Below are positions 9,267 through 55,323 of a DNA stretch of 64,000 bases, piece after piece. Numbering within the stretch: position 1 is the stretch's first letter; the number at the start of each line of letters is the position of its first letter. Made by a program: the position numbers and the translations under genes. The notes beneath the pieces were generated by a model, which saw only the letters and a program-made list of their open reading frames with translations, was not told the DNA's origin and ran no database searches. The stretch lies in the sequence record MZ443771.1. One strand, given 5' to 3'.

Positions 9267-9527
9267 ATGGTATACGAACGCGAAGAACTTCAAGACATGC
9301 CGCTTGATGTGCTCTACCATCTGGCGTGCGCTAAAGGTCTGCTGGACGATCTCGACGATGAAGACGATGTGCCTGATCGTGAAGTGCTGGTGGGCATGAT
9401 TCTTGATGCGCAGAGCGAAGATGAACAGGCAGAACAAAACGCTGCCGACAAACAACGCGCCGAAGATGATCGCGATCCGCGTATCAATCGTCGTGATGGC
9501 CAAGACGGATCTGAGGACTACTGCTAA
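9267..9527 (+). CDS. Small acidic protein with HeH-like (Rho-N/SAP/LEM-like) module
   Basis: EELQDMPLDVLYHLACAKGL...DREVLVGMILDAQ; SD GGAG. Confidence 0.7.
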   Translation: MVYEREELQDMPLDVLYHLACAKGLLDDLDDEDDVPDREVLVGMILDAQSEDEQAEQNAADKQRAEDDRDPRINRRDGQDGSEDYC

Positions 9528-9745
9528 TGTCACCTACTGAACTGAATGAATATGTTCACCTCGTACTGACGCCTGTTGCTATGGCGTGGCGCGAGCAATT
9601 CCCCAAAAAGAAACAAACGATTTGTACGATGAAGACGCCGTACTCTTGTCGTATCAAGTTCGTTGATGACCGTGAAGTTGAAAAAGCGTGGCAAGCATTC
9701 TGCCGCACACACGGTATCAAGAACGAAGAAACACTCGAAGTCTAA
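9527..9745 (+). CDS. Hypothetical protein
   Basis: TAATG coupling with upstream gene. Confidence 0.7.
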   Translation: MSPTELNEYVHLVLTPVAMAWREQFPKKKQTICTMKTPYSCRIKFVDDREVEKAWQAFCRTHGIKNEETLEV

Positions 9746-9749
9746 ATTC

Positions 9750-9778
9750 AAGGGCTGCCATTGCTGGTGGCCCTTTTT
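9750..9778 (+). terminator. Intrinsic terminator
   Basis: AAGGGCTGCCA-TTGC-TGGTGGCCCTT then T run. Confidence 0.8.
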
Positions 9779-9824
9779 CATTTCTGTAAATACTCCGCAC
9801 ACTAACCACAACGCGGAACTTATA

Positions 9825-10193
9825 ATGCGCCGATTTGTACTCATCTTCAACGTCAGTCAGGAAGAGCTAGATGGCCGTCGTTTCTTTCAAGCAAAGCTCA
9901 ACATTGTCTCATCACTGCGCCGCGCTCGCTGTGTGTTTCTCGTCGTGCGCGAGACAAAGCAGGTACTCTGTGTCTCTGAGCTAACGTATCAACCAAGCGT
10001 CGAACCCGGCATTCGTCAGGTAGACTTCGACGCCCCGCGTGATGTGACCGCATACGTTCTGCCATTCACCGAACTCACTACTGCTATGGTCAATAACTCG
10101 CAAGACCCAAGCATTCGCTACTTCGGCCGTCAGCTTGAAATGGATGCTGACCAGCTCAAACGTTTTCACACTCAACTGGAGATTGTCCCATGA
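9825..10193 (+). CDS. Hypothetical protein
   Basis: ATG 9825 downstream of CTGTAAATA motif; ATGA overlap with next gene. Confidence 0.7.
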   Translation: MRRFVLIFNVSQEELDGRRFFQAKLNIVSSLRRARCVFLVVRETKQVLCVSELTYQPSVEPGIRQVDFDAPRDVTAYVLPFTELTTAMVNNSQDPSIRYFGRQLEMDADQLKRFHTQLEIVP

Positions 10194-10432
10194 GTCAGTC
10201 ATTAGGCGCTTCACTTGGTGCTCGCTTCGCTGTTAGCTCTCAGGAGAATATTGAGCGCCGTAAGAAGCGTGACCCGAAGAACAAGACGCTGACCTGTGCT
10301 GGCACTACAGCGCAGTACAATGCTGTCGGTATGCTCGCTAACAAACTCGACGTGTCACGCTCGCGTGTCATTGAAATGGCAATCGAAGAATTGCTGGCGA
10401 AGCATGGTATTAAGGTTGAGAGTGATGAGTAA
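10190..10432 (+). CDS. Ribbon-helix-helix (CopG-like) DNA-binding protein
   Basis: TLTCAGT...LANKLDVSRSRVIEMAIEELL matches the RHH pattern. Confidence 0.6.
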   Translation: MSQSLGASLGARFAVSSQENIERRKKRDPKNKTLTCAGTTAQYNAVGMLANKLDVSRSRVIEMAIEELLAKHGIKVESDE

Positions 10433-10790
10433 CGATACGCATATCTTTTGCCGACTGTATGGCGTACAGCACCGACTGCGTATCATCGCATATAACTTCC
10501 TCAAACCTCAGCACATGATAACAGTCGATCCCTCTGACGTGCTCAAGATGATGCCTCGCATTATGGTGGGCGCAGCATACGACACGTACACGCCGTACAA
10601 AGTGATCAAGGCGGGACGTGCTGACTTCAAAATCCGCCTGATAGAGCGCACTGATGCGAACGTGTGGCGCTACGTGTTCGAAGACTATCGAGGCAAGCTG
10701 TTTGAGACTTACTTAAATCGGAGAACGTATGATACAGCTGGGGACGATAACAGCGTTAAGTCTAAAAGACAAAGCGCCACGATCCACTGA
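10425..10790 (+). CDS. Hypothetical protein
   Basis: Overlapping start in operon. Confidence 0.65.
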   Translation: MSNDTHIFCRLYGVQHRLRIIAYNFLKPQHMITVDPSDVLKMMPRIMVGAAYDTYTPYKVIKAGRADFKIRLIERTDANVWRYVFEDYRGKLFETYLNRRTYDTAGDDNSVKSKRQSATIH

Positions 10791-17548: not shown

Positions 17549-17615
17549 GCTCGTTTGTGCTATAATAGAGATGAACGCTAGACACTCGTTTAGCTACTTA
17601 CATGAGGATATGTAT

Positions 17616-19070
17616 ATGAAAAAGATTAAATACACTTTTCGCCTGACTGACCTTGTTCGCATCTCCAAAACTCTGCCTGTAACTATGAAGCATTTCGATG
17701 GTGCAGGAGAAGAAGCCATTGTTGTTGGTCGTCAGAATGAAAAAGACGAGTACGCGTTACACATCAAACATCATGGTTATGTTGCATGGTACCCAGCCGA
17801 GTGCTTGACGCTGATCTCTCACAATAACGGTGAGCTGCTTGATCAGTGGGAAGCAGGTGACTACGGTCGCGATAAGAAGAAGAAACGCAAGATGCCAGAG
17901 GCGCTGCGTAACTTCACTGCTATTCTGCCTGTCACCTGCAACGCTGATTGCTCGTTTTGCCCAGAGAAAGAGATGGAGCAGAAAGCTGCCCAGCAAGAAT
18001 GGCAAGACGGTTTGATTGCTTCGATCAAACGCATGTACAAGAAAACGAAGTTCGACCACGTATCAATCTCTGGTGGCGAACCTACACTGCGCACGAAGTT
18101 CTTGTTTGAGACTATCGACCGCATTCAGAAAGAAACGCCAATCAAGAAAGTAGGCTTGACGTCTAACGGCTTCTTCCTTGAAAAGCAAAACAGCACGTTC
18201 GACTTCTTAGACCGTAACACTACGCCTGAGATGACGAGCAAGCTGTCGCATCTGAATATCAGTATGCACTCGTTCAATCGTGATCTCGCAAACAAGATCA
18301 TGGGCGTGAACTACAAACAGACTCTGGAAGATCTTGTGCGCTTCCGCCGTCAGCTTGGTCGTGAAGTTAGTTTCCACATTAACTTTGTGATCAACGACAA
18401 GACCGGCTCAATCACCGAAGAGTTCAAACGTGCCGCCAACTTCATGCGAGCGAACCCGTTCATCGACATTGTGTTCCGTGTTGACTACAACGATGTTGAA
18501 CTGTCCAAAGCACTGCGCAAATATGCTATGGATTATGCAGAGTGGGAAGAAGAAAGTCGCATCGCCGCTGCTGCTCGTAAGAAATGTAGAATGAAGGAGC
18601 CGAAAGCACCTCACATCGTTCAGAAGTTTGATCGTTTCTTTGGAGGCAGCACTAACGATGAAGCTGAGAGTGCATGGACTACAGGCTGCCCATCATGCTT
18701 CACCCATGCGTCTAACATCGTCAATAACAGTCGCGCATTCTTGAAAGCGTCTTCATACGAACCGAACGACGACGAAGAAGAATACACTGAGCTGGTCTAT
18801 CACATGGACGGCGCTCTGTATTGGGACTGGACTCGTAATGACCCTGTACCAGAACCACGCAGCAAACGTTTCGACTTCGAAATGAAAGAAGAAACTGTCA
18901 CTCAACCAAAAGCTGTTAAGAAACCTAAGAAGGCCAAACCTGTTGCTATGACCAGCAAGCAGAAGAAAGAAGTTGAGCGTGAGTCTGGTGTTGATAGCTG
19001 CAACTATTCATCTCGCTGTGGTTTTGTTGGCGGTAACGGTCGCTGTGGCTTCGGCAGCGGTCTGTGCTAA
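17616..19070 (+). CDS. Radical SAM protein with N-terminal beta-domain and C-terminal Cys/Gly tail
   Basis: CNADCSFC (CxxxCxxC), SISGGEPT, LTSNG, LNISMHS, GCPSC. Confidence 0.88.
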   Translation: MKKIKYTFRLTDLVRISKTLPVTMKHFDGAGEEAIVVGRQNEKDEYALHIKHHGYVAWYPAECLTLISHNNGELLDQWEAGDYGRDKKKKRKMPEALRNFTAILPVTCNADCSFCPEKEMEQKAAQQEWQDGLIASIKRMYKKTKFDHVSISGGEPTLRTKFLFETIDRIQKETPIKKVGLTSNGFFLEKQNSTFDFLDRNTTPEMTSKLSHLNISMHSFNRDLANKIMGVNYKQTLEDLVRFRRQLGREVSFHINFVINDKTGSITEEFKRAANFMRANPFIDIVFRVDYNDVELSKALRKYAMDYAEWEEESRIAAAARKKCRMKEPKAPHIVQKFDRFFGGSTNDEAESAWTTGCPSCFTHASNIVNNSRAFLKASSYEPNDDEEEYTELVYHMDGALYWDWTRNDPVPEPRSKRFDFEMKEETVTQPKAVKKPKKAKPVAMTSKQKKEVERESGVDSCNYSSRCGFVGGNGRCGFGSGLC

Positions 19071-19080
19071 GGACAATCGA

Positions 19081-37076: not shown

Positions 37077-38726
37077 ATGTCATTCGATATGCGCAAAAAC
37101 GTACTCATGGTTCGCTCTATGTCTCACGGCCAACCGTTCTATAACTTCTACAATGCAGTGGGCATCGAGTTTACGCTTGCCGGTTACCAGCTTAAAGAGA
37201 TTTATGATTGCCATTACCAAGGTAAGCTGAGTGGCATTCGCACGTATTGGGGCTTCTCAAACAAAGCCACCAGTGAGACTTTCGAGTTCTCATCGCGCGG
37301 CGATCTGATGTGGAACGTGTCGCTGAACAATACTTGCCACACTCTGCTTCCGTTTGAAATGATTATCGGGCATGAGGGTTTCAACGTTGTTAATGGCTTC
37401 ATGATTGAAGACCATGTACGCAAGCTGATCCGAATCCACCAGAGAGCTGTTGGTCGCACTCTCGAAAGTTATGTGTGGTTCGAAAAAATGACTGAACCTC
37501 AGATGCGTGAGATGCTGGCTGCTCTTGGCCTGGGCCCGCTGCGCATTGAACGTGCAGACCGTGCTGAACTGATCAAGATTCATACCGAATGGCTGCGTAA
37601 GCATGACGACGAGTTTAAGTATACGCACGATGCTATTGGTCTCGATCACGACCAGAAGATACCTGCTGACTTCTACGATGACCACGGTCGCCGTATCTCT
37701 CGTCGTATGCTGGCTGCACACAAAACAGTTGAGATGATGGCCACCGAGCTGTCCAATCTCATTCGCATTTTCGACCTGAACCCTAACTTCAATCACAAAG
37801 ATCCGATGTGGGAGTTCGGGCTTGCTACAATCGCCGAGCGTTTCATCTATGCAGAAGACGCGAAAGAAGCGCTTGCTGCTATTCTCGAAAACAGCCAGTT
37901 CGTTGTTAACGGTGTGTATGCGTTAGCGCGTGATTACGATTGGCGTCAAGTCAACGAAGAAACAGAGGAATACCGCCAATCGTTGATTCGTCGTCTGCTG
38001 CAAGAACTGCGCAATGAAATCGAAGCCGAAGATTCGATGTTTGTTGTCGAAGACGGGATTGTGATGATCAAAGCTGTCGCTGTCACTGCGCACAACGAAC
38101 AACTGTTGGCCGAACCTGACCTCGAAGAAGATGAAGAAGAGGACGAAGAAGAAGAGGTTGATGAGGTAGAAGATACGTCCGAAGAACAACGCGCCGTGTT
38201 GAAAGCACTCACTGCTCTGCCTGACGATTCTCTGCGTAAGCTGTGTACTAATCATAAGCTCGCGCCTAAGCATCGTATTAGAAAGCTGACTCGCACTGAG
38301 ATGATTGAACTGTGCTGCGATTCATTCGGTACTGAACTGCCTGACGATATGGATGACGTAGACCCAGAAGCTGAGGCGGAAGTTGAGGCAAAAGCTGAAT
38401 CAGGCAAACGTCCACGCAAGTACCCAGCTTTGGTTGATGACGTTAATATCAGCTACGACACTATTCGCTCTATTCTCATTCGTGCTAAAATCCCAGGCAC
38501 TGATCATAAAGGCGAACTGCATCGTGGTACGAAAGAGGCCCGAGCTATCGCTCGCAAGAAAATACTCAATAGCCTGAAAACTGCTGTTGATACAGGCTTG
38601 CTTGAGACACTGGCTGCCTTTACGCTCGAAGCACTCGCCTGTGCTCTGACTAAAATGAAAGACGGTGATCGCTATCCTCGTGACTCTGCGTACCTGAAAG
38701 AACTAATTAAACACGCAACTCGTTAA
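37077..38726 (+). CDS. Multidomain protein with two HeH-like modules and an acidic linker
   Basis: FEKMTEPQMREMLAALGL...DRAELIKI; LTALPDDSLRKLCTNHKLAPKHRIRKLTRTEMIELCCDSFG; SD AGGAG. Confidence 0.8.
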   Translation: MSFDMRKNVLMVRSMSHGQPFYNFYNAVGIEFTLAGYQLKEIYDCHYQGKLSGIRTYWGFSNKATSETFEFSSRGDLMWNVSLNNTCHTLLPFEMIIGHEGFNVVNGFMIEDHVRKLIRIHQRAVGRTLESYVWFEKMTEPQMREMLAALGLGPLRIERADRAELIKIHTEWLRKHDDEFKYTHDAIGLDHDQKIPADFYDDHGRRISRRMLAAHKTVEMMATELSNLIRIFDLNPNFNHKDPMWEFGLATIAERFIYAEDAKEALAAILENSQFVVNGVYALARDYDWRQVNEETEEYRQSLIRRLLQELRNEIEAEDSMFVVEDGIVMIKAVAVTAHNEQLLAEPDLEEDEEEDEEEEVDEVEDTSEEQRAVLKALTALPDDSLRKLCTNHKLAPKHRIRKLTRTEMIELCCDSFGTELPDDMDDVDPEAEAEVEAKAESGKRPRKYPALVDDVNISYDTIRSILIRAKIPGTDHKGELHRGTKEARAIARKKILNSLKTAVDTGLLETLAAFTLEALACALTKMKDGDRYPRDSAYLKELIKHATR

Positions 38727-41267: not shown

Positions 41268-41479
41268 TGAGCAGACCGACACAAGACGAAATCAATGGTC
41301 AGATAGCTGCCTCCGAAGAGCAACGCTATAACGAGCAGATCGCTCAATACGATGACTGGACAGACGACGAGCTGGCTGATGCTGTAGAAGCAAACGAGCT
41401 TGTGGGTGAAGACGAAGACGCAAGCGACTACAGCCGCGAAGCGCTGATTCGAATGCTGCTGGCGGATCGACGATTCTAA
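41267..41479 (+). CDS. Small acidic HeH-like protein
   Basis: YDDWTDDELADAVEANEL...DYSREALIRMLLAD. Confidence 0.7.
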   Translation: MSRPTQDEINGQIAASEEQRYNEQIAQYDDWTDDELADAVEANELVGEDEDASDYSREALIRMLLADRRF

Positions 41480-41733: not shown

Positions 41734-42546
41734 ATGCCAAACTTACGTGCTAAACCAGAAGACAAATTCTCTAAAGCTCGTTCTGCGAAGAACTCACCTG
41801 AACGTCAGGCTGCTGCTGAGAAGAAACGCACAACCCCACGCGGTCCGTCTTCTGCTAAACCTCGTCAGTTGCCGCCGGGCTATGGCTATAAGTCAAAAGC
41901 TACAGGCGAACGTGCGCCAGAGCGTGACGATAAAGAGTCCCAGAAACCTGATTTGAGTAAGAAAGACTGGGTTGCTCGTCGTGACGCAACGCCGAAGATG
42001 CGTGATGAAGAACGTGTATTCAATCTCGTTCACGCAATTCTGGCTGCATGGAAAGCGGATATCGGACACGCCGAACATACGGCAGCATCTTCTGGTATCA
42101 TCAAAGTGTCTCGTCGTAAAGTTGAAGGCGCATTGCGCGATCTCAAGAATACGCGCTTCACTAAAATCCCAACGCTCATCAATGAAATTCTGACACACTC
42201 TGATGTGTGTGAGGAATTCGGGATGTGGGTGTACGTCGAGCACGACACGCCGGATTGGATCTTCGTGCGTCTGCCTGAAGACAGCACGCCTGTGCTTCGC
42301 GCTGATATCGTCTACGACCGCACAGGTCAAACTGCTACGACGATCACGACTTCGAGTGAACCGCTGCTTGAAGTCTTAGGGGAAGACGACGAGCCAGAAA
42401 TGCTCGAATGCAATGAGCGCGATATTGAAGACCTTGAAACTAAGGCAATGCGCAAAGAGCTGATCGACAAGGGCATCATCAAGCCAGAAGCTGCTGATAA
42501 GCTGAGTCGACCGGATCTGATGAAGCTGTTAGCGTACTACGCATAA
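41734..42546 (+). CDS. Protein with basic disordered N-terminus and C-terminal HeH-like module
   Basis: K/R/P-rich first ~90 aa; IEDLETKAMRKELIDKGII...KLSRPDLMKLL; SD AAGGA. Confidence 0.8.
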   Translation: MPNLRAKPEDKFSKARSAKNSPERQAAAEKKRTTPRGPSSAKPRQLPPGYGYKSKATGERAPERDDKESQKPDLSKKDWVARRDATPKMRDEERVFNLVHAILAAWKADIGHAEHTAASSGIIKVSRRKVEGALRDLKNTRFTKIPTLINEILTHSDVCEEFGMWVYVEHDTPDWIFVRLPEDSTPVLRADIVYDRTGQTATTITTSSEPLLEVLGEDDEPEMLECNERDIEDLETKAMRKELIDKGIIKPEAADKLSRPDLMKLLAYYA

Positions 42547-42585: not shown

Positions 42586-42596
42586 ATCTGCGAAGT

Positions 42597-42652: not shown

Positions 42653-42712
42653 ATATGCAGACGCAGTGAGCGTCGAAATCAAACTAAACAACAATACTGA
42701 GGAGTATTTATC

Positions 42713-44314
42713 ATGGCACGTATCGAAACTAACTCTAACCTGGTTGGCAAAACTATCATCCTGCTGAACGGCACCAAATCTAAAATCGAAGATGCTATCG
42801 CGTCCGGTTACAAGGTGAAAGGTCAGAGCAAACGTATCGCAACCCGCTGCGTTATCAAAGAGGGTTCTCACTTCCGTGAGATCGAGCGCATGAATCTGAG
42901 CCAGCTTGAAGATACCGGCGAAGGTTACGTCAAGCTGAAAGAAGCGAAAGCGTCCGGCAAGAAAACTGCCGGTAAGAAAGAAGCTGCAACGCCGAAAGCG
43001 TCCGGCAAGAAAACTTCTGGTAAGAAAGATGCGAAACCGTCGAAAGACAAAGAACCTAAAGTTCGTCGCAAATCTTCCGAAGAGCAGTCCGAAGATTATC
43101 AGAATCTGGCACACGCTATCATCAAAGGCGGCAAAGCTAAACCTGCAGTTGAAATCGAAACTGTTGACGAAGCGCTGACCGATACTGTGGCAAAACGTAT
43201 CGCCGATATCGTGCTTAACACTGACGTTGCGAAAGTGTGCGCTGATAACAAAACGCCGATCGCAAACGCCCTGGATGTTACTTACGGCGCCGAGTATGCT
43301 GCTGATGGTAACGTCATGCAGATCACTCTGAACCTGCAATACGCGAAGCCTGTCAAAGTGCTTGCTCGCCCTACGCTCGAAAATGCAGAAGCTATCGCAA
43401 TGCGAGCGCAGAAAATGATCGCGCCTAAGCTGTCTAAGAAGCTGGCGAAAGCGATTCGTGAAGCGTTCAATATCGAAGACGCAGACGAGCTGGAAGCAGG
43501 TACTATGCTGCTGAAAGACGGCGAAGAGTTTGTCTTCTACGGCGAATCTGCGAAGCACCTCGGCAAAGCGCTGCTGTATGTCGTAGCTACCGACAAGTTC
43601 AAATCTGTCCTTGGCTCTACGCTGGGTGAGTACGAAATCCCAGACGCAGAAGAAGAAAACGACGACGAGGAAGAAGTCGAAGAAGAGGAAGAAGAAGAGG
43701 TCGAAGAGGAAGAGGAAGAAGAAGACGGCGAAGAAGATAGTGAAGAAGACGGCGAAGAAGAAGATGCCGCCGAGTACGAATACGTCAAAGTCACTAAAGA
43801 CCATATCAGCATGGTTAACAAGAAAGTGACCGCGAAGTATCACGCCGCGCTGGCTGAACGCTTCAACACTACCGAAGAAGTTCTCGTCCCTGGCCTCGTA
43901 TTGACTGACGGCGACACAACGTTCGCGTACCTTGGCTGTGATAGCAAAGGCGGCCTGCTCGTTATCGACGTAGAAGCTGAGGCAGATGATGAAGATGTTC
44001 TGCTGTATAGCAAAGCGGATATCAAAACGCTGAACGACTTCAACCCTGTGATCGATAGCGGCCTCGTTTCTGACGACGAAGAAGAAGACGGTGAAGAAGA
44101 TACCGAAGACTTCGAAGACGGTAACGACGATGAAGAAGAAGAAGAAGACGGCGAAGACGAAGAAGAGAGCTTCGAATTTGACGACGAAGAATCTGTTGAC
44201 CTCGAAGATCTGTCTGACGACGAACTGCGTGAACGTGCCGTTGAGCTGGGTCTGACTACACCGCGCAAATCTGAAAACATGACCGGCGCACAACTGCGCA
44301 AGCTGCTGAAATAA
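42713..44314 (+). CDS. Multidomain basic/acidic low-complexity protein with C-terminal HeH-like module
   Basis: SD GAGGAG; K-rich linker, two E/D tracts, duplicated ~45-aa beta-module, LEDLSDDELRERAVELGL...MTGAQLRKLL. Confidence 0.88.
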   Translation: MARIETNSNLVGKTIILLNGTKSKIEDAIASGYKVKGQSKRIATRCVIKEGSHFREIERMNLSQLEDTGEGYVKLKEAKASGKKTAGKKEAATPKASGKKTSGKKDAKPSKDKEPKVRRKSSEEQSEDYQNLAHAIIKGGKAKPAVEIETVDEALTDTVAKRIADIVLNTDVAKVCADNKTPIANALDVTYGAEYAADGNVMQITLNLQYAKPVKVLARPTLENAEAIAMRAQKMIAPKLSKKLAKAIREAFNIEDADELEAGTMLLKDGEEFVFYGESAKHLGKALLYVVATDKFKSVLGSTLGEYEIPDAEEENDDEEEVEEEEEEEVEEEEEEEDGEEDSEEDGEEEDAAEYEYVKVTKDHISMVNKKVTAKYHAALAERFNTTEEVLVPGLVLTDGDTTFAYLGCDSKGGLLVIDVEAEADDEDVLLYSKADIKTLNDFNPVIDSGLVSDDEEEDGEEDTEDFEDGNDDEEEEEDGEDEEESFEFDDEESVDLEDLSDDELRERAVELGLTTPRKSENMTGAQLRKLLK

Positions 44315-44395
44315 TCTCGCTGTAAACTGAACGACTGTGCGGTTCAAATCGAGCCGCACATTTATTGACAACTAAGCTGATTGAGGAATCACACT

Positions 44396-46472: not shown

Positions 46473-47742
46473 TCACGTATTCAACCACGACGAGAAGCAA
46501 TTGCTTTTGAAGGTGGCTGAGTCTAAATATCTGGTGCGGCTAGACTGCCCCGACTATTTGAAGAAGTCGAAACACGCGATTGAGATCAGACATACTGTGA
46601 CCAACCGTGGCGAGCAACGTCGAAGCGGTACGATAACAACCGCATTCGTACCGCGCATTCATTCTGCGACTGTGCAGCGACTGGTACGTGAAGTGCGAGA
46701 CAGCCAAAGCAAAAGCGCGTCTGAGGGACTCGCTGCGTTATTCGAGTTAGGCCTGGGTGTGCCGAAGCAACGTGATATCGCAACGTACCTGCGCGACTAC
46801 TCGCGTGAGAACGATAAGAAGGGTGTGGGTATCAAGTATATCCGCAAACTGATTAATGAGTATCACCGCAAGCACCGTCATAGTTTTGCTGGCAGTCGCT
46901 GGTTGATGCCCGCTGCGTATACAGCGAACATGCTCAACATGCAGTCGTTCATTCATCTGAAAGAGAACGGTTACTCGAAGAAAGTCAAAGTACCTGACGG
47001 CGTTCCTGTGATCTTCATCTATCAGAACACGAACCACGAGAATGCAACGTACAGCATGTGTGACGCATTCGTGATTAGCCCGCTCGGTTACCCGATGCCG
47101 TTCGCTCAAATCGCGTTGCGCCCTGAGTTCAAAGCTGCGCCGAAAGAGTTCAGCTCGAAAGCGTTTCGTGGTAAGAGCATGTACGCTATGGTAATGGGTG
47201 TGCTGCACTGGGAGAAGGGCGATGCGCTCGATAACTTCCGTGAGCTGGTGGAGATTGACGACGAGCCGTATCTGACGTTGCTTAGTGATGAACGTTATGC
47301 TGATCGTCGTTCGCCTGAGTATCAAGCTCTACTGGACGAACGTGCTGCGATGAATGCGAAGCGCCAGAAGTGGAGTGACGTGATTGCGAAGTATGGCAAC
47401 ACGACACGCACACTCAAGCCAGAACAGGCTGAGCGTCTGGCAAAAGCCGAAGCGTTCTTCATTAAGCGCAAAGAGTTCTTGGACGCTTTCGACAAGTTCG
47501 AAAAGAAAGAGAACAGCAAAGCCGCCCGTAAGTTTGCTGCCGCATCTGCATCGTTCGCTGCTGTTGATTGTGGTGTTGTGATTGACCGAACAACGTATCG
47601 CTCTGTGTCGTCAGGCTTGGATGTTGTGAACAAGATTCTCACTCGCTGGGGATTCACGACAATCAACACTGTCGATAGTAGTCAGAAGAAATCCATTTTA
47701 ACCTATGACCTGAAAAATGCAAGTCGCATTTGGTCTCTGTAA
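46462..47742 (+). CDS. Basic hypothetical protein
   Basis: 426-aa ORF. Confidence 0.8.
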   Translation: MFYDHVFNHDEKQLLLKVAESKYLVRLDCPDYLKKSKHAIEIRHTVTNRGEQRRSGTITTAFVPRIHSATVQRLVREVRDSQSKSASEGLAALFELGLGVPKQRDIATYLRDYSRENDKKGVGIKYIRKLINEYHRKHRHSFAGSRWLMPAAYTANMLNMQSFIHLKENGYSKKVKVPDGVPVIFIYQNTNHENATYSMCDAFVISPLGYPMPFAQIALRPEFKAAPKEFSSKAFRGKSMYAMVMGVLHWEKGDALDNFRELVEIDDEPYLTLLSDERYADRRSPEYQALLDERAAMNAKRQKWSDVIAKYGNTTRTLKPEQAERLAKAEAFFIKRKEFLDAFDKFEKKENSKAARKFAAASASFAAVDCGVVIDRTTYRSVSSGLDVVNKILTRWGFTTINTVDSSQKKSILTYDLKNASRIWSL

Positions 47743-47768
47743 ACAACTTATCTGAGGAGATAACGCAC

Positions 47769-50700
47769 ATGTCTAATAACAATCTGGGTGGCGCTGCTGC
47801 TTTTGGCTCTGAGACACAAAAGCATCTGTCCGAACAACAACGCCGCGCTTCATCGTCTGAAAGCGGTCACGTAAACAAATGCACAATCGTTGTGCTGACC
47901 TCGCTTAATGCTCATAATCGTTTCTCGTGGATGACGGCAGACGAGCAACTGAAAGAAAAGCAGATCGAAGGTAAAGTGCTCGACCGTTTGCCAAAACTGA
48001 TCGAACGTGCGACTGGCCCGTCTACTGACACGAACAGCGCGTACTTCATTTTGCACCCAAACAACGGTGTGCCTACTCGCATTGACGAGCGTATCAAAGT
48101 CGGCGAAGGCGATGCAGTAATCGTTTCATATACTGTAAACAAAGCAGTGTCTGAAATGCACGGTAGTTTATCGCTTGCTCTGTTTAGCGCGGGTGAAACT
48201 GACCTGGCTGATCTGGCATCTGAGTATGGCATCCACACCATCTCGATTGTCGAAGAAAGCAAAGCTGGTCCGTTCATCAAAGCGCTCGCCGCACAGGTGG
48301 AAGCTCTGCAAACTGTAAATATCAGTAGCATTGACGAAACTGATGGTGCGTTCGAAAAAGCGGTAATTGACTACAGCGTTCTGCCGGGTAACCCTGTAAC
48401 TGTACTGACCGGCGCTGTGCGTACCTTCATCATGCAAACTATTAGTGGCGAAGTCTTCGCTGCAATCCCCAATAACGGAGAACTGAACGTGAAACAACCT
48501 ACCACTGCACCGATTGTCGACCTGAGCGAAGACTTCGACGAAGGTGATGAAATCATCGACCAGAACGAAGGCGACAATGACGGTGAAGCTACCGGTACTG
48601 ATCTGCTGGGCTACAAAGCAGAAACTCTGACTATCGAACAGATGGTCGAAGCGCTCGAAGCGCTGGAGTACGATGTGTCTGCGATGAGCGAAGAAGGTAT
48701 TCGTGAATCGTTCCTCACTGAGCAGGAACTCTGGTTGAGCAACAACGATCAGTCTGCCACTGACGACGAAGAAGAAGAAGACGGTGAAGAAGTTGACGGC
48801 GATGCCGAAGACGAAGAAGCCGAAGAGGACAGCGAAGAAGAAGAGTTTGACGCTGTGCAATTCCTCGCTTCTGTGCTGGTTGCCGAAGAACTGGATCGTG
48901 ACGGCCTGAAAGTTCTGATTCGTACTCAAGACCTGAAGGTCATGAAGTCTGACACCGTCGAAACTCTGACCGCCAAACTGCTTGAGCTGGTCGAAGGCGC
49001 TACCGAAGAAGAGATGGTAGAAACGCTGAACACCTTCGTAGCTGCTCTGCAAGAGCGTGGCATCGACTGTCCAAACATGCTGGCCGCTCTGTCTTCTGAT
49101 GAAGAAGACGAAGAAGAAGAAGTTGACGGCGAATCCGAAGAAGAGGAAGAAGAAGATTCTTCCGAAAGCGCGGACGAAGAAGAAGACGAAGACGACATTC
49201 AGGCGCAAATCGACGCTGTGACTGATCCTCTCGACTACTTCGCTTTCGCCGGCGGTATGCTTGACGCTGAACAGCGTTCTGCCGCAGTTGCTGCGATGGG
49301 CGAAGACACCACGAACATGACCATTGTTCAGGTGATGAAAGCGTTCACCCGTATTCAAAGCCAGACCAATACTCTGGACATTGAAGCCGAAGCGCATGAC
49401 GAAGACGCAGAAGACGCGTCAAACGTTGACACTCTGACTGAACTGCTGGGTCAGTATGACGAAGACACCGTTGAGCACGTAGCTGGCGCTCTGGGTATCG
49501 ACACTGCTGGTTGCGAAAATGTAGACGAAGTAATTGCAGCAATCGCAGACGGCGGTAGCGAAGAAGACTTCGCAGTAATCGAAGCGCTGGCAACCGACCT
49601 GGGTGTTGACCTGTCAGAAGTTGCTGACGGCGATCAGCTGGATTATGTTGACGCTGTGCTCGCTGTGCTGCCGGTGTACTTCGAAGACTCAGACGAAGAC
49701 GACACCGAGCAGGAAGAAGAGTCCGACGAAGAAGTTGAAGACGAAGGCGATAACGAACACGAGCAAGCTGCCGAAGGCGATGACGCTAACGATAGCATGA
49801 AGTTCGTCACTGACGTTGACACCGAAAACTCTGTCGGCCCGATGCTGTCTGTCGATATGGACCAGACGCTGATCATCAACTACACCCTGACCGACGGTGA
49901 CACCTACTCTGCAATCGAAAGCGAGCTGGCTGATATCGAAGGTGTTAACTACCGCTTCCCGTTCAACCTGGGTAAAGCCGGTAAAGCGCAGGGCTCTATG
50001 CACCTGCCAGCGCAGTCTCTGCTGGAAATCTGCGAGCGTGTTAAAACAACTCGTTTCCTCGCTGACCCGCGTTCGTTCGATGTTGCTGTGTGGTCTAGCA
50101 GTCTTGAGCAAACTCTGGAGCAGGAAATCCGTGCTGCGCTGTATGCCGGTCGTATCGAAGAAGGTATGGACCCAAGCGAAGCGGGCATCGTAGTTGGTGA
50201 CTTCATCGACGACGAAGAAATGCGCGAAGCGATGGAACTCGGTCACATTGACCCGTCGCAGTACGACGAACTGCAGGGTGAGCGTCTGCCGATTGAAAGC
50301 CTGTATAGCGCACGTACTCGCGTTCGCCCAGTTCAGGTTGACACTGCACACGTTGCACTGCACACCACCGTGCTGAACATTGCGCTGCCGGGCTTCTGGG
50401 GTGATCAGTCTGTTGCACGTATGATGCAGGGCGCAGTTAACCGCGTCATCGCTCAGGCGCAGTCTACCGAAGGCATCAAAGTGTACGCTGGCTTCACTAT
50501 GGAATCTGCTGCACTGGTCAACAACGACCGCCTGTTTGAAGCGCTGGAAACTCTGCGTAGCTTCGACGGTGTTCAGTCTTACTCTGCCGCTGATGCTGCA
50601 AACTTCGACGACGCCGAAGACGTTATCGAAGTAGCGTCTGCACTGGACACCCGCGACCTGCCGCTGTCTGTGCTGTCTGGTGGCCTGGCCGCTGCAACGT

Positions 50701-50798
50701 TCGACAACGGCGGTGACCTGACCATTCTGATTCCGTGCTCTGTCGAAGAAGAAGACGAGCTGGACGAAGAAGCAGAAGACGAAGGCGACGACGAGTAA
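47769..50798 (+). CDS. Very large acidic protein with repeated HeH-like modules and D/E linkers
   Basis: SD GAGGAG; ~1010 aa; several E/D tracts between short helical modules; highly expressed codon bias. Confidence 0.9.
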   Translation: MSNNNLGGAAAFGSETQKHLSEQQRRASSSESGHVNKCTIVVLTSLNAHNRFSWMTADEQLKEKQIEGKVLDRLPKLIERATGPSTDTNSAYFILHPNNGVPTRIDERIKVGEGDAVIVSYTVNKAVSEMHGSLSLALFSAGETDLADLASEYGIHTISIVEESKAGPFIKALAAQVEALQTVNISSIDETDGAFEKAVIDYSVLPGNPVTVLTGAVRTFIMQTISGEVFAAIPNNGELNVKQPTTAPIVDLSEDFDEGDEIIDQNEGDNDGEATGTDLLGYKAETLTIEQMVEALEALEYDVSAMSEEGIRESFLTEQELWLSNNDQSATDDEEEEDGEEVDGDAEDEEAEEDSEEEEFDAVQFLASVLVAEELDRDGLKVLIRTQDLKVMKSDTVETLTAKLLELVEGATEEEMVETLNTFVAALQERGIDCPNMLAALSSDEEDEEEEVDGESEEEEEEDSSESADEEEDEDDIQAQIDAVTDPLDYFAFAGGMLDAEQRSAAVAAMGEDTTNMTIVQVMKAFTRIQSQTNTLDIEAEAHDEDAEDASNVDTLTELLGQYDEDTVEHVAGALGIDTAGCENVDEVIAAIADGGSEEDFAVIEALATDLGVDLSEVADGDQLDYVDAVLAVLPVYFEDSDEDDTEQEEESDEEVEDEGDNEHEQAAEGDDANDSMKFVTDVDTENSVGPMLSVDMDQTLIINYTLTDGDTYSAIESELADIEGVNYRFPFNLGKAGKAQGSMHLPAQSLLEICERVKTTRFLADPRSFDVAVWSSSLEQTLEQEIRAALYAGRIEEGMDPSEAGIVVGDFIDDEEMREAMELGHIDPSQYDELQGERLPIESLYSARTRVRPVQVDTAHVALHTTVLNIALPGFWGDQSVARMMQGAVNRVIAQAQSTEGIKVYAGFTMESAALVNNDRLFEALETLRSFDGVQSYSAADAANFDDAEDVIEVASALDTRDLPLSVLSGGLAAATFDNGGDLTILIPCSVEEEDELDEEAEDEGDDE

Positions 50799-50810
50799 TG
50801 TCGTCTGATT

Positions 50811-50840
50811 GAGTGGCTCGAAAGGGCCACTCGCTTTTCT
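50811..50840 (+). terminator. Intrinsic terminator
   Basis: GAGTGGCTC-GAAA-GGGCCACTC then GCTTTTCT. Confidence 0.7.
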
Positions 50841-50854
50841 GGGGATCTGTAAAC

Positions 50855-51685
50855 ATGACACAAGAAGTAGACCACGGCGCTAACATTGTACAGATGATTA
50901 CTGCCCGTGACGATAAAATCCGCGAACTGACTGAAAGCAACGAACAGACTGCTGGCCGCAACGAAGATGTTGAAGCCGAGTTGCAGGAACTGTCCCGCGA
51001 TCATCTGGCGCTCAAAATCAAACTGCGTAGTACCGAGCGTGAGCACACCGCTGAAATCGCACTACGCGATGAGCGCATTCGTGAAGTTGTTGGATTCTGC
51101 AATGAGCAGTCCCAACAAATTCGTGAACTGCAAGCAGAACTCGAATCTGTAAAGAATAGTCAGACACCGATGAGTGTAACGCAGCATGCCCTGCATACAA
51201 TCATGACCGCTGGTGTTAGCAAGTATCATGCTATCGTTGCGCAGTTATCCCAGCATAGCGTGAACAACGATTCAAACAAATCGCGGCGCGCTATCAATAC
51301 GCTGTATCAAACCGATACCGTGACAGCGCATCCCTCGATGTACCGCGCAATTGCTCGCTACGTTAATGCCTCAGGTAGTACGCTACCATCGGTAGACGCA
51401 CTGCGTAAAGCGATTCGCCAGTACATCGTCGATAACCACGACCTCTTCTACAAAGATGCTGAGTACGAGTTATCGCGGTTGGCACTACGTGAAGTCTGGG
51501 TGATGAAACGCAACCCTGCGCACCTGGGTTTTGCTGCACGTAATATCTGTCAGGCGTTCGATTGGTTACCCGCTGCATACAACGATGACCTCGATATGCT
51601 TGACGACGAAAGTGAGTATGAAGATTTATTTGTCGATTCTGTTGCGAAAATTTGTACGCATTTGATTGACGATAGCTTTAAATAA
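50855..51685 (+). CDS. Coiled-coil hypothetical protein
   Basis: Heptad-like N-terminal half. Confidence 0.8.
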   Translation: MTQEVDHGANIVQMITARDDKIRELTESNEQTAGRNEDVEAELQELSRDHLALKIKLRSTEREHTAEIALRDERIREVVGFCNEQSQQIRELQAELESVKNSQTPMSVTQHALHTIMTAGVSKYHAIVAQLSQHSVNNDSNKSRRAINTLYQTDTVTAHPSMYRAIARYVNASGSTLPSVDALRKAIRQYIVDNHDLFYKDAEYELSRLALREVWVMKRNPAHLGFAARNICQAFDWLPAAYNDDLDMLDDESEYEDLFVDSVAKICTHLIDDSFK

Positions 51686-51731
51686 ATCTGTAAAACTTTC
51701 CTGCAATCGAATCTGTAAACACTAATTGAAG
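51686..51731 (+). promoter_or_regulatory. CTGTAAAYA motif (candidate phage-specific promoter), two copies
   Basis: ATCTGTAAAAC and AATCTGTAAACACTAATTGAAG, intergenic. Confidence 0.55.
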
Positions 51732-51778
51732 TTCGAACCGAGCACTACGCTCAAACTAATACATCCCGGAGTATTACA

Positions 51779-52324
51779 ATGTCTAAAGTTGCAAAGAACA
51801 GTTCACTGGTTCCTACCCTGGCTCAACGTATCGCTAAGAAGTCTGGCTCTATCGGTACTTCAAAAGTTAAGCCGTCTGAGCTGCCGCACGACATTCTGAT
51901 CGAAAGCGTTCACGCTGTTGAGCTGATTGGCTTCATCACTGACCGCACCGAAAACAGCGTTACCATTCGTCACAAACGTGGCTTTGGTTCTTCTGCGCAA
52001 ATCGTTTCTACTTTCGGTCCTAACCAAATCCTGTCTGTCCTGGGTGAAGCCGGTACGCACGGTAGCGTTACTGCTCTGATCTCTGCTCCGATTCGTGAGT
52101 ACAAAGGCTTCAAAGTTAAATACGTTGGCTCCATGATCCACGCGACCTCCGTTGAAACCGGTGAAGTTGTTCAGATCAATACCGCGCTGCCTGGTTACAC
52201 CGTGCGTCCTACCGTGAACGAAACTGCTGCTGCTAAAAAGTACGGCACCCCGGCGCCAGCCAAAGCTGCTAAGAAAGACAAAGCAGAAAAATCTGGCAAG
52301 CTGGCCAAGAAAGTAAAAAAGTAA
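51779..52324 (+). CDS. Beta-rich protein with Lys/Ala tail
   Basis: SD GGAG; highly expressed codon bias; PAPAKAAKKDKAEK tail. Confidence 0.85.
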   Translation: MSKVAKNSSLVPTLAQRIAKKSGSIGTSKVKPSELPHDILIESVHAVELIGFITDRTENSVTIRHKRGFGSSAQIVSTFGPNQILSVLGEAGTHGSVTALISAPIREYKGFKVKYVGSMIHATSVETGEVVQINTALPGYTVRPTVNETAAAKKYGTPAPAKAAKKDKAEKSGKLAKKVKK

Positions 52325-52358
52325 TAAAGTCTGACGAAGACTTTTAACTGACTTTCTG

Positions 52359-52438
52359 AAATCTGTAAATATTAAGTATGCAGCGAGATAAAAAGTTCTC
52401 GCTGCCTGTCTCTCGAAATCTGTAAATATTAATTGAAG
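52359..52438 (+). promoter_or_regulatory. CTGTAAATA motif, tandem copies around a hairpin
   Basis: AAATCTGTAAATATTAA twice; CAGCGAGA/TCTCGCTG stem between them. Confidence 0.6.
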
Positions 52439-52473
52439 CAACGTCGCTTCTACTCAAACAGGAAATAAATACC

Positions 52474-53265
52474 ATGGCTAAAGCAACCGCAAATACCGCA
52501 GCAATCGTTCTGGCTAAAATGCTGGGCGTAGTTATCGAAAGCGCCGATGCGAAAGAAATCGCAGCAATTCTGAAAGAAGCCGGTCTGACTGTCTCTGGCG
52601 GTAAAGTGGTAAAAGCTGAAAAAGGCGGTAAAGCTGCTAAAGGCAAAAAGGCTAAAGCGCCTACCGTTGCTGAAATCGTCGCTGCTGTTAAAGACGAAGA
52701 AGAACTGGACATCTCCGGCGTTGACGAAGATACTCTGCGCGAAGCAGTGATCAAAGCCAAGCTGTCTACCAAGAAAAAGGCAGGCGCGCTGGACGAAGAT
52801 GAACTGCGCGAACTGCTGAACGACAACCTGGGCGGCGAGTCCGAAGAGGACGAAGACGACGAAGAAGAAGAAGAGGACGAGGACGAAGACGACTCGGACG
52901 ACGAAGATGAAGACGGCGACGACGACGAAGACGAAGACGACGACTCTGATGATGAAGAAGAGGACGAAGACGACGAAGACGGCGACGACGAAGAAGAGGA
53001 CGAAGACGACGAGGACGAAGATGAAGACGAGGACGAAGATGATGAAGACGCCCTCGACCTCGACGACCTCGACAAGAAAGAGCTGTTAGCTCTGGTCCTG
53101 GAACACAAGCTCGCGCCGAAGAAAAAGGCGTCTAAGATGGACGAAGACGAACTGCGCGAACTGTGCGAATCTCACTTCGGCGGTGACGACGAAGAAGACG
53201 ACGAAGACGAAGATGAAGACGACGAAGACTTCGACGACGAAGACGAAGACGAAGACGACGAGTAA
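52474..53265 (+). CDS. Protein with basic N-terminus, two HeH-like modules and ~70-residue D/E tract
   Basis: SD AGGA; DEDTLREAVIKAKL...LDEDELRELL and LDKKELLALVLEHKLAPKKKASKMDEDELRELCESHFGG. Confidence 0.88.
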   Translation: MAKATANTAAIVLAKMLGVVIESADAKEIAAILKEAGLTVSGGKVVKAEKGGKAAKGKKAKAPTVAEIVAAVKDEEELDISGVDEDTLREAVIKAKLSTKKKAGALDEDELRELLNDNLGGESEEDEDDEEEEEDEDEDDSDDEDEDGDDDEDEDDDSDDEEEDEDDEDGDDEEEDEDDEDEDEDEDEDDEDALDLDDLDKKELLALVLEHKLAPKKKASKMDEDELRELCESHFGGDDEEDDEDEDEDDEDFDDEDEDEDDE

Positions 53266-53344
53266 TATCATCTGATCTCCGGCGCGCCCCTCTAGTTCTG
53301 ACGAATGAGCGAGGGGCAAATATTCGATAAAATATTTCGAATAT

Positions 53345-53397
53345 TTTTGTAAAAAGTTTCAAAATTTCTTGCAGACGTATGTTGAATATAATAATGT
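53345..53397 (+). promoter_or_regulatory. Sigma70-like promoter with AT-rich UP element
   Basis: TTGCAG-17nt-TAATGT preceded by A/T tracts; lacks the CTGGAC box. Confidence 0.5.
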
Positions 53398-53483
53398 ACG
53401 TCTACAGGAAATCAAAACCTGAACAAATTTATCTTTTCATCCAGCGGTGAAAACGCCGCATCAAAACAAAGTAAGGAAATCCA

Positions 53484-54002
53484 ATGAGCAAGAAAATCGT
53501 TAGCGGCCTGAACAAAGAAATCCGCGCCCTGGACAAGTCTGAGAAAAACCTGGTTAAAACTGCTGCTGGCCTGACCAAAGAAGCAGAAGCGATCGCTGAA
53601 CGTCGCGCTAACCTGACTGCCCAGGTTGAAGCTCTGCAAACTGGCGGTGACGCTGCTCCAGCTAAAGCTGCTAAGCCTGCGAAAGCAGACAAGAAAGCTA
53701 AAGCTGAAAAAGCGGCCAAGCCTGCTAAAGCAGAAAAAGCTGGCAAGAAGGCTAAAGCTGAGAAAGCTGAGAAGCCTGCCAAAGCTGAAAAAGCTGGTAA
53801 GAAAGCTAAAGCAGAAAAAGCTGAAAAGCCTGCTAAAGCTGACAAGAAAGCTAAAGCTGCTAAGGCAGACAAAAAATCCGCTAAGCCTGCCAAAGCTGAA
53901 AAAGCTGGCAAGAAAGCAAAAGCTGAAAAGCCGGCCAAAGCTGATAAAAAAGCTAAAGGCAAAAAGAAAGAAGCCGAAGACTTCGACTTCGATATGGAAT
54001 AA
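53484..54002 (+). CDS. Histone H1-like (PAKA repeat) protein
   Basis: N-terminal coiled coil, 7 PAKA units within K/A/E repeats, acidic tip EDFDFDME; SD AAGGA. Confidence 0.85.
   Translation: MSKKIVSGLNKEIRALDKSEKNLVKTAAGLTKEAEAIAERRANLTAQVEALQTGGDAAPAKAAKPAKADKKAKAEKAAKPAKAEKAGKKAKAEKAEKPAKAEKAGKKAKAEKAEKPAKADKKAKAAKADKKSAKPAKAEKAGKKAKAEKPAKADKKAKGKKKEAEDFDFDME
53650..53965 (+). repeat. Imperfect coding tandem repeats (KAEKAEKPAKAEKAGKK)
   Basis: Recurrent GCTAAAGCWGAAAAAGC units. Confidence 0.85.
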
Positions 54003-54035
54003 GCAAGTAATCGCGCACTAGCGGTCACTTGATCG

Positions 54036-54068
54036 AAAGGGCAGCGCTGACGAGCGTTTGCCCTTTTG
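54036..54068 (+). terminator. Intrinsic terminator
   Basis: AAAGGGCAGCGCT-GACG-AGCGTTTGCCCTTTT. Confidence 0.8.
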
Positions 54069-54101
54069 TCATATCTGTCTCGAATTTTTTGAGGTTACCC
54101 A

Positions 54102-54596
54102 ATGTCTGCTGAACATCTTCTCAATGACGACCTACCAGACGATACTCGCGTCGTTAACGTTCCCCAAACAAAAGAAAAGCCTAGCTACTACGAGCTAATG
54201 TCTCTGCGCTTAGAAGCTGGTGCACGTCTTTCCCGCGCTATCAAAACGTTACGTGATGCTAACGTTCTCCCAACATCTGGCACTGGTTCAACGCTTCTCG
54301 CTGCTGCTCTAGACGTAGCCGAACGTCACTTCGCTGATATCTGCATGGGACTTGTTCCTGTTCGTGACGGTGCTGACGTATGCACAATCAAAATGCGTGA
54401 AGACCTTCCCGCGTGTGTCGAAGCGTTTCGTATTATCGTCATGGAACATGCGCAACGTGAAGCCCTTGAGCGTGAGTGCCGCAACATGATCGCTGACGGT
54501 AACGGCTTCAAGATTCTCACTCAGCCTCAAGTGCTGCACATCGAAAACAAACACGTCTGTAATGAGGACTGCAATCATGGGCCAGAAACTGTCTGA
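54102..54596 (+). CDS. Hypothetical protein
   Basis: SD GAGG. Confidence 0.75.
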   Translation: MSAEHLLNDDLPDDTRVVNVPQTKEKPSYYELMSLRLEAGARLSRAIKTLRDANVLPTSGTGSTLLAAALDVAERHFADICMGLVPVRDGADVCTIKMREDLPACVEAFRIIVMEHAQREALERECRNMIADGNGFKILTQPQVLHIENKHVCNEDCNHGPETV

Positions 54597-55323
54597 GCAA
54601 ATCAACCGCTATTTCAATCTCATGGAGAAAATCCGTGAGCAAATGTACCGCGTACTGCCTGTATCTAATCGCTACCTGTGTGTAGTAAGTTTCAGCACTC
54701 AACTACAGGCACTCCAGTGTGTGCTTGTAAGCAAAGAGTCGCTCATGGAAGCGAAGCTCATTGAAGGCCTAACGGGGCAAGAGCTGATCACCTATGGTCA
54801 GTACATGAGAACAGCCGAAGAGTGGGTCGCCAACGGTATGCAAGATGATTACCCGTTCACTCAGGATAAAGATGTGTACGAGGAGTACCGCAGCCTGACA
54901 CGCGACGAACAGATGCCTGTTCCTGAAATGGATGATGGCGAAGAAGATGATCTCGACGTACAGGAGATGGACGATCTGCGTACATCAATTCTCTGCGCCG
55001 ACAAAGCCACACTGATGCAGATGTTTGCTGACGAAGGCTTAGGTACAAAAGGAACTGCTGCTGATATGGATGTGGGTCAGTTGCAGGATGCTCTGTGCGA
55101 TCACTATGGCCTTAACCCGGATGTTGGCGTCAAAGTTGTTGACGTTGTTGGTGCGTTGGTTGAGCGTTTAGAAAACATGCCTAAACACGAAGCTCTGAAA
55201 GAAGCGCATCACCTGACAAAAGAGGAACTGCTCAGTCTCGCAGACGCATGGGGAATTGAGAAAGACGCACACGAAAGCACAATGCGCTCTCTGATTAAGG
55301 GTCATATACTGCGCCGTACTTAA
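54577..55323 (+). CDS. Protein with two C-terminal HeH-like modules
   Basis: ADKATLMQMFADEGL...MDVGQLQDALCDHYG; LTKEELLSLADAWGI...TMRSLIKGHI. Confidence 0.78.
   Translation: MGQKLSEQINRYFNLMEKIREQMYRVLPVSNRYLCVVSFSTQLQALQCVLVSKESLMEAKLIEGLTGQELITYGQYMRTAEEWVANGMQDDYPFTQDKDVYEEYRSLTRDEQMPVPEMDDGEEDDLDVQEMDDLRTSILCADKATLMQMFADEGLGTKGTAADMDVGQLQDALCDHYGLNPDVGVKVVDVVGALVERLENMPKHEALKEAHHLTKEELLSLADAWGIEKDAHESTMRSLIKGHILRRT

Follow-up and report, generated by a model that had tools for sequence, protein, structure and literature searches.

Eight copies of a module of ~40 residues, carried by six neighboring genes of the Erwinia jumbo phage pEa_SNUABM_20, constitute a real homologous domain family. 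These genes lie within the final 64 kb of the phage genome (genus Alexandravirus; sequence record MZ443771.1, 265,871 bp), the whole of which was analyzed here and is referred to as the window (window position = record position - 201,871). The phage has been placed in the Lu11/PaBG group of jumbo myoviruses (PMC7412058). A sequence-only reading of the window had proposed that a helix-extended-helix (HeH) module recurs genome-wide in at least eight otherwise unrelated genes, usually next to tracts rich in aspartate and glutamate (D/E tracts), and that no described system resembles it. We find the family to be a regional cluster, comprising six neighboring genes over ~18 kb; it is a new, narrowly distributed domain family and a variant of a known small-domain type. 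The structural and evolutionary description of the family is put forward with high confidence, the role that we propose for the module more tentatively.

The gene starts named in the sequence-only reading proved to be the GenBank coding sequence (CDS) starts of MZ443771.1, and the residues that it quoted are present. Taken as a literal regular expression, its recurring pattern has one matching site and is too rigid to serve as a test. Hidden Markov models (HMMs) built from single window sequences, leaving out one gene at a time, recovered g52474 clearly and g42713, g54577a, g37077 and g9225 marginally, while g41267, g41734 and g47769 were not recovered (here and below, genes are denoted by g and modules by m). 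As these models were underpowered, they were replaced by ortholog-enriched profile-profile tests: 16 candidate segments were delimited in the window, one profile was built per module with orthologs from six relatives in three genera, and all pairs were compared by hhalign, with column-reversed targets as controls (n = 105, median score 8.3, maximum 15.9). A segment was accepted as a member of the family if its profile matched one or more core members with a score higher than that of any reversed control and if it carried the 11-position hydrophobic signature described below. Eight copies in six genes were accepted (two in g37077, one each in g41267, g41734 and g42713, two in g52474 and one in g54577), fewer genes than had been claimed, and each copy has at least one hhalign score of 21.8-64.9 to another member.

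The accepted copies fall into a core of five (m42713, m52474a, m52474b, m37077b and m54577a), with mutual hhalign scores of 22-65 at probabilities of 60-98%, and a second group of three (m37077a, m41267 and m41734), which score 22-27 to the core. Independently built PHROG profiles cross-match in the same regions: g52474 and g42713 have PHROG families of their own (phrog_30618, E 1.8e-94, and phrog_33433, E 9.5e-188, respectively), the g42713 family profile is matched over its final 42 positions by residues 76-117 of g52474 (E 8.5e-9), and the C-terminal regions of g37077b and g42713 match the g52474 family (E 8e-9 for m37077b). The string HKLAPK...K[LM]...[ML].ELC...FG, noticed in the sequence-only reading as shared by g37077 and g52474, is real, and the pair that carries it, m37077b and m52474b, is among the strongest (hhalign 59.3, probability 98%). 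Furthermore, when 1.84 billion representative proteins were searched with a profile made from the eight accepted modules, just 35 matched at E <=0.001, with values down to 8.6e-28.

All window genes, and hence all eight copies, lie on the + strand. The best-conserved copy, m42713 (44201..44311), forms the extreme C-terminus of g42713 (533 residues), an ancestral carrier; it is kept in seven of seven relatives, in which the flanking acidic tracts differ in length, and scores 44 to each of the g52474 modules (probability 97%). Modules of this type are also found in the ortholog of phage JA29 and in the proteins P0005, P0026 and P0034. The two modules of g52474 (263 residues, 47% D/E), m52474a (52708..52839) and m52474b (53059..53187), score 64.9 against each other. 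Two copies are likewise present in g37077 (549 residues): m37077b (38208..38336) is an insertion cassette with its own acidic tract, and m37077a (37485..37601) lies within the conserved N-terminal region, is kept in seven of seven relatives and has second-tier support (hhalign 25.3 to m42713, 22.5 to m41267 and 21.5 to m37077b). The C-terminal 42 residues of the 70-residue g41267, a gene present in only some relatives, make up m41267 (41351..41476), an acidic-loop variant that scores 26.9 to m42713 (probability 86%), while m41734 (42424..42543), at the C-terminus of g41734 (270 residues), scores 21.8 to m42713. Module a of g54577 (248 residues), m54577a (54991..55116), scores 30.2, 29.0, 24.4 and 22.5 to core modules and 23.0 to genuine Rho_N repeats. 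Most copies are located at or close to the C-termini of their proteins.

In the AlphaFold model of full-length g52474 (all models are of monomers), two confident islands, with predicted local distance difference test (pLDDT) values of 85-91, coincide with modules a and b; in each, a first helix of 10 residues leads through a linker, itself containing a short helical turn, to a second helix of 11-12 residues. For m52474b within this model, pLDDT is 87-90 and the helices span residues 201-210, 216-219 and 224-235; m52474a, modeled in isolation from an alignment of 47 paralogs and orthologs, has a pLDDT of 86.3 and a predicted template modeling score of 0.67, with helices at 27-36, 42-47 (the short turn in the linker) and 50-60. 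The arrangement that defines the fold class, two helices and an extended linker of ~6-12 residues within ~40 residues, is therefore what AlphaFold predicts, and we take the module to be a domain that folds independently.

The family signature comprises 11 hydrophobic positions, several of which are hydrophobic in every lineage, a conserved Arg after the first core Leu, a Gly/Lys-Leu that ends helix 1, two Lys positions in the linker and, at the N-terminus of each helix, an acidic cap. Along the module, a helix 1 of ~10 residues (...[DE][DE]EL-R-x-[AV][VI]...) leads through a G/K-L turn and a 10-residue linker to helix 2 (D-E-x-E-L-R-x-L-L), the linker being Lys/Arg-rich (T-x-K-K-A-x-K-M) in four of the eight lineages.

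As had been claimed, the modules usually stand next to D/E tracts: in the 25 residues adjoining core copies, D/E content is 40-92%. The 77-residue tract that joins the two g52474 modules (52837..53067, +) is predicted to be disordered (pLDDT 47-57) and differs in length among orthologs, as does the 46-residue tract ahead of m42713 (44072..44209, +), and the 21-residue tract ahead of m37077b (38112..38174, +) comes and goes with that module. Disordered blocks of both kinds, Lys-rich and D/E-rich, are present in g42713, g52474 and g41734. Acidic tracts and module are nevertheless separable features, since five open reading frames (ORFs) have acidic tracts without a module; elsewhere in the record, two more proteins, encoded at 108772-110850 (minus strand) and 200554-201837, have extended D/E tracts (56 and 19 sliding windows of 15 residues that qualify, respectively) and likewise no module. 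In the C-terminal tail of g52474 (53185-53262), the last 13 residues (EDFDDEDEDEDDE) contain a lone Phe amid pure D/E and are invariant in Alexandravirus, in Y3, in pEa_SNUABM_13 and in metagenomic homologs, while the acidic tract upstream varies freely. This tail resembles the acidic-plus-aromatic C-terminal tips by which SSB-type proteins dock on partner proteins.

Several segments that had been counted as copies did not hold up. Of the five in g47769 (48621..49676, +), four score at the level of the hhalign controls, mostly <14, and the fifth, m47769a, is marginal, at most 19.4; none was recovered by any HMM, whether in the leave-one-out tests or in the ortholog-enriched genome scan, and their net charge is about -10 each, versus -5 to +2 for the core modules. 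The second g54577 segment, m54577b (55204..55317, +), has a best score of 16.2 and was missed by the enriched HMM. An N-terminal segment of g52474, m52474n, reaches 19.4 but is not the module, since AlphaFold models it as a helix and then a beta hairpin. More equivocal is the segment of g9225/g9267 (9282..9419, +), which is kept in 10 relatives and scores 18.7 (probability 23%) to m41267 only, a profile from ten orthologs giving control-level scores to all other modules; it is possibly a distant acidic-loop variant. Thus, of the recurrences listed in the sequence-only reading, those in g37077 (both), g41267, g41734, g42713, g52474 (both) and g54577 (the first) stand, those in g47769 and the second in g54577 fall, and that in 9267 is marginal; failure to align, which had been named as the finding that would speak against a common module, is seen for four of the g47769 segments and m54577b but not for the eight accepted copies. 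Because the rejected segments had been picked by eye for their likeness to the motif, they also show, as a stringent negative control, how generic acidic amphipathic helices would score.

The genome-wide distribution that had been proposed was not borne out. Scans of all six frames of the 266 kb, using the seed HMM and then the ortholog-enriched HMM, with locally shuffled decoys, identified no secure member beyond the cluster at 37.5-55.1 kb of the window. The best additional match, at record 18,825-19,250 (L002, outside the window), scored 11.7 bits versus a decoy maximum of 10.0; there, the C-terminus of an unrelated small protein (GLGTTSKDLDEMTDEELRDL) partially matches the linker and helix 2 of the module and may be a degenerate or half copy.

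Comparison among relatives revealed how the module has been gained and lost. The g42713 and g52474 modules are near-invariant between genera, whereas the adjoining D/E tracts freely change length. Four relatives have the cassette of m37077b and its acidic tract and three lack it cleanly; m54577a is deleted in two; and in the case of the g41734 module, relatives have it in place, lack it or carry it on a separate ORF further downstream. Given this clean presence or absence in sister phages, several of the modules behave as discrete, portable cassettes, and together with the hhalign results this bears out the earlier claim of a portable domain common to genes that are unrelated elsewhere. In Dickeya phage AD1 (L015 9716-9832), and likewise in pEa_SNUABM_32, the g41734 ortholog stops in the acidic tract; the AD1 module is the C-terminus of a separate downstream ORF, AD1_310, as in a gene split or frameshift at the acidic linker.

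At the site of m37077b, two other relatives have a different, g52474b-like module lineage, which is 62-64% identical to g52474b in protein but only 57-60% in DNA. A recent gene conversion between g52474b and this variant g37077b cassette was rejected on the basis of this low DNA identity, in favor of old cassette turnover. Grouping in the module tree follows position, so that the paralogs must be older than the divergence of these genera. The distant relative JA29 has a syntenic arm of 38 kb, in which secure copies were found just in the orthologs of g52474 (two) and g42713 (one), with one marginal match in a 721-residue protein; hence two carriers are ancestral, and the spread to six is lineage-specific. 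These comparisons show the module to have spread within the Alexandravirus/Sasquatchvirus lineage through old duplication, together with cassette insertion, loss and replacement.

Homologs of the two ancestral carriers are few. At 90% identity, the g52474 family falls into ten clusters, none of which has a name or an assigned domain, and the g42713 family is known only from Erwinia, Dickeya and one Yersinia jumbo phage. Copy number is two or three in g52474 homologs and one or two in g42713 homologs; P0001 has three modules, and P0005 has one more at an internal position. P0002 and P0028, which belong to other phages, carry three to four modules, with acidic linkers between them, on unrelated N-terminal domains. 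P0028 (L035 8001-9320) is encoded directly after DNA polymerase A, a PD-(D/E)XK nuclease and an AAA_24 ATPase; gene order is the same in Serratia phage Serbin, in which the P0028 homolog, gp45 (L038 4468-5436), has two diverged helix-basic loop-helix repeats between acidic linkers. This conserved, unnamed protein, with its two to four repeats and a small C-terminal domain, is suggested by its gene order to be a replication or recombination accessory protein. The N-terminal domains of P0002 and P0028 could be given no family name: a likeness of the P0002 domain to T4 gp32 was unconfirmed by Pfam, PHROGs, PDB or tblastn and was dropped, and the idea that the P0028 domain is an SSB was a guess from gene order alone, to which no family name could be attached.

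The sequence-only reading had compared the module with the HeH folds of Rho-N, SAP and LEM. SAP, LEM, Ish1 and Rho_N are related helix-extended-helix families, with Pfam gathering scores of 23.9 (PF02037), 24 (PF03020), 26.6 (PF10281) and 24.9 bits (PF07498), respectively. Full-length window proteins gave nothing relevant in Pfam and NCBIfam, including no Rho_N, SAP or HeH, and none of the modules matched at a curated cut-off. For SAP, the best window score was 18.4 bits (m42713, E 0.0017), with 17.7 for the AD1 ortholog and 20.5 for P0029, and sub-threshold matches were obtained with 6 of 47 modules. For LEM, g42713-type modules scored 17.0 bits (E 0.0045) and a g41267 ortholog 11.8 (E 0.19); for Ish1, a g52474b ortholog matched over the full module length with 16.2 bits (E 0.014), the best of 47 modules having an E of 5.6e-4; and for Rho_N, no window protein or module matched, even at E=1, P0009 scoring 14.1 bits. 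When isolated window modules were searched as single sequences, just m42713 gave SAP and LEM matches, again sub-threshold. The recurrent sub-threshold matches, which come from three separate module lineages and from P0009 and P0029, are all to HeH families.

A further link runs through P0025, one of the 35 proteins matched by the module profile (E 7.6e-5), whose repeats are Pfam Rho_N (E 8.9e-20) and stand beside a canonical SAP domain. Aligned in register by hhalign, the module has modest scores to these Rho_N repeats, of 18.5 (over 33 columns, probability 46%) and 23.0 (probability 65%), and scores 18.8 to a SAP domain; reversed controls give 5-8 for the Rho_N repeats and 5-13 for the comparisons overall. 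In the search of 1.84 billion proteins, the thousands of Rho and SAP proteins in the library were not matched. In a viral structure library, the sole good matches were uncharacterized proteins of the same phage group. A proposed resemblance of the g52474 N-terminus to the ribosomal stalk proteins P1/P2 was without Pfam support. The comparison made in the sequence-only reading is thus upheld in the helix-linker-helix layout and in weak similarities that are to HeH families only, but curated cut-offs are not reached and Foldseek retrieves none of these folds. It is plausible, although weakly so, that the module is a divergent, uncurated branch of the HeH class that lies outside SAP, LEM, Ish1 and Rho_N as defined.

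The genomic setting bears on what the module might do. All record CDSs listed are annotated as hypothetical proteins except for a tail sheath protein, and in the carrier region of this 266-kb phage ~20 consecutive genes have no label but 'hypothetical'. Recognizable neighbors, all on the + strand, are a RecA-like protein (28-2556), a radical SAM enzyme (17571-19067), a UvdE endonuclease (25397-26374) and two topoisomerase II subunits (55434-57488 and 57750-59396), on the basis of which we assign the region to a non-structural DNA-metabolism arm of the genome. The six carrier genes are non-structural and cluster directly upstream of the topoisomerase II genes; the tail sheath gene and a large minus-strand block occupy other parts of the genome, away from the module region. 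Carriers are co-located and syntenic between genera.

Some further features of this arm were observed. The RecA-like protein, at 843 residues, is about twice the size of RecA or UvsX, and its RecA Pfam match is split over two separate stretches, which suggests an insertion or extra domains. Window positions 40806-41264 encode an acidic protein of 153 residues that has no family match and contains two Cys clusters, CAECDRPVEDCVC and CRVCHQQVCEC, a possible small zinc-binding site. AT skew is 0.13-0.22 across window positions 40000-56000, versus ~0.03-0.06 in the rest of the window; since GAA/GAC-rich acidic tracts account for this rise, we discounted it as a replication signal. The window is without a tRNA gene, and its acidic genes are GAA-heavy, with 116 GAA codons in g47769, for example; in pEa_SNUABM_13 (L012 8696-8790), a tRNA-Glu(ttc) gene lies within the syntenic cluster of extremely Glu-rich genes.

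We tentatively favor the view that the module is a weak, tethered nucleic-acid-binding head that may localize its carriers to DNA. This preference stems from the SAP/HEH tails found on Ku (PMC11936186) and from the Lys/Arg-rich linker in four module lineages. The compact helical unit and its basic loop would form the head, whose ligand would most plausibly be DNA; the head would bring otherwise unrelated phage proteins to one substrate during replication, recombination or the takeover of the host nucleoid; the flexible acidic tracts would serve both as spacers and as electrostatic competitors that tune its binding; and proteins with at least two heads could gain avidity or act as bridges. DNA-related genes are close by: the RecA-like protein, UvdE and both topoisomerase II subunits are encoded near the carriers, and the P0028/Serbin homolog belongs to the polymerase/PD-(D/E)XK/AAA_24 block.

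A number of points weigh against this proposal. Nucleic-acid binding by the module is something we infer, and every match to a named HeH family is sub-threshold. Profile searches of the PDB gave just chance-level matches, such as EF-hand proteins and glycosylases, and Foldseek, run with full-length g52474 (swamped by disorder) and with the isolated module, retrieved no Rho, SAP or LEM structure, although neither search has much power with a helical unit as short as 40 residues. The ligand of LEM is a protein, BAF, and not DNA, so that membership in the HeH fold class leaves the ligand unfixed. The linker is basic in just four of eight lineages and acidic in m41267, which makes DNA binding by every copy doubtful. 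Finally, the modules are net neutral to acidic (-5 to +2 in the core) and their host proteins have net charges of -1 to -96; any DNA affinity would consequently be weak or regulated. The acidic-linker variants, m41267 and possibly g9225, sit uneasily with every single-ligand model.

A serious alternative, although somewhat unlikely in our judgment, is the idea of the sequence-only reading, with which the architecture is compatible, that the module acts as a protein-docking tag, which would bind one hub, either a part of the phage replisome or topoisomerase or a host protein, and recruit six phage proteins to it, the acidic tracts serving as flexible tethers; the short tails that recruit partners to SSB may be compared. 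One small domain on unrelated proteins that are encoded side by side, mostly near their C-termini and usually beside acidic tracts, is what such a tag would look like; the HMM scans place it nowhere else in the genome, the repeats of P0028 and Serbin gp45 also lie on an acidic linker region in a replication/recombination block, and LEM, a relative in fold class, is an established protein-binding HeH. However, no candidate hub was found and nothing points to Rho or RNA polymerase, and the linker, the likeliest contact surface, ranges from strongly basic to strongly acidic by lineage, which argues against a single partner surface.

That the copies share no function, the module being a stable mini-fold that was duplicated and retained as a cap or solubility element beside acidic tracts while each carrier acts via its other domains, we consider unlikely. 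The module has no functional annotation in Pfam, NCBIfam, PHROG or cluster records, and the frequent loss of copies between sister phages, with the gene kept, suggests that several are dispensable; yet conservation of the g42713 and g52474 copies far exceeds that of the flanking sequence, between genera and out to relatives of ~35% identity, and surface Arg and Lys residues are conserved as well, which indicates selection beyond fold stability.

Equally hard to favor, and quite unlikely, is self-association, in which homotypic or heterotypic binding between modules would bring the six carriers into one assembly, which, with opposite-charge blocks (Lys-rich and D/E-rich), could form a multivalent network or condensate. 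Two to four copies per protein in several carriers, the two kinds of disordered block in g42713, g52474 and g41734, and the conserved co-location of the carriers would all suit this model; the one database hint, a match to the EAD7 adaptor domain, is a 17-residue sub-threshold fragment and was disregarded. In an extension that we regard as improbable, the six carriers would be clients and scaffolds of a membrane-less compartment for DNA replication or host takeover: the modules would be stickers that bind DNA, each other or both, the D/E and Lys-rich tracts would be charged spacers, and copy-number change and cassette turnover would tune valency, in a design that recurs in P0028 and Serbin gp45. 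No protein-shelled nucleus is known for this jumbo phage.

Chance likeness of generic amphipathic helices in acidic proteins does explain the four g47769 segments, m54577b and the N-terminal g52474 segment, and would fit the recovery of just some copies by the single-sequence HMMs, but for the eight accepted copies it is excluded by hhalign scores above all controls, the independent PHROG cross-matches, the E-values of the 35 database matches and confident, matching structure predictions, and as an account of the family it is highly improbable.

One portable domain common to six hypothetical genes offers a first experimental handle on the region: a binding result on a single 40-residue peptide could place a whole block of uncharacterized genes in a pathway. 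Proteins from the replication blocks of unrelated phages likewise join a small folded head to acidic linkers of great length, and this combination may be a general design to tether or regulate DNA-associated proteins.

Among known families, SAP is the top named match for g42713-type modules and P0029. Like the module, it has ~35-40 residues with two amphipathic helices, the pattern L..L...ELR.....GL, a Lys-containing linker and then L[IR].[LR]L, and it is often terminal on DNA-handling proteins; in contrast to SAP, the module has a linker that is ~2 residues longer and predicted to be partly helical, and scores of 17.7-20.5 bits. Rho_N resembles the module in its succession of helix, basic linker and helix, in its similar length and through the link with P0025, but Rho and its homologs are not matched by the module profile, and nothing connects the module with Rho function. 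LEM and Ish1, which recur as weak matches of g42713-, g41267- and g52474b-type modules, are eukaryotic nuclear-envelope families, and the module scores fall below their cut-offs. Both phrog_30618 and phrog_33433 are listed as 'unknown function', and the module common to them is not described as a domain. The earlier statement that no described system is like this one therefore stands with respect to Pfam, NCBIfam and PHROG annotation, but is too broad in that the attachment of short HeH or SAP modules to DNA-handling proteins is already familiar. Such a case is Ku, a DNA-end binder with HEH/SAP C-terminal extensions (PMC11936186). The Ku extensions differ from the modules described here in that they occur as one copy per protein, without acidic linkers and without multi-gene dispersal in one genome; what the two have in common is an HeH unit of ~40 residues that a DNA-metabolism protein carries at its C-terminus and that lineages have gained and lost (PMC11936186).

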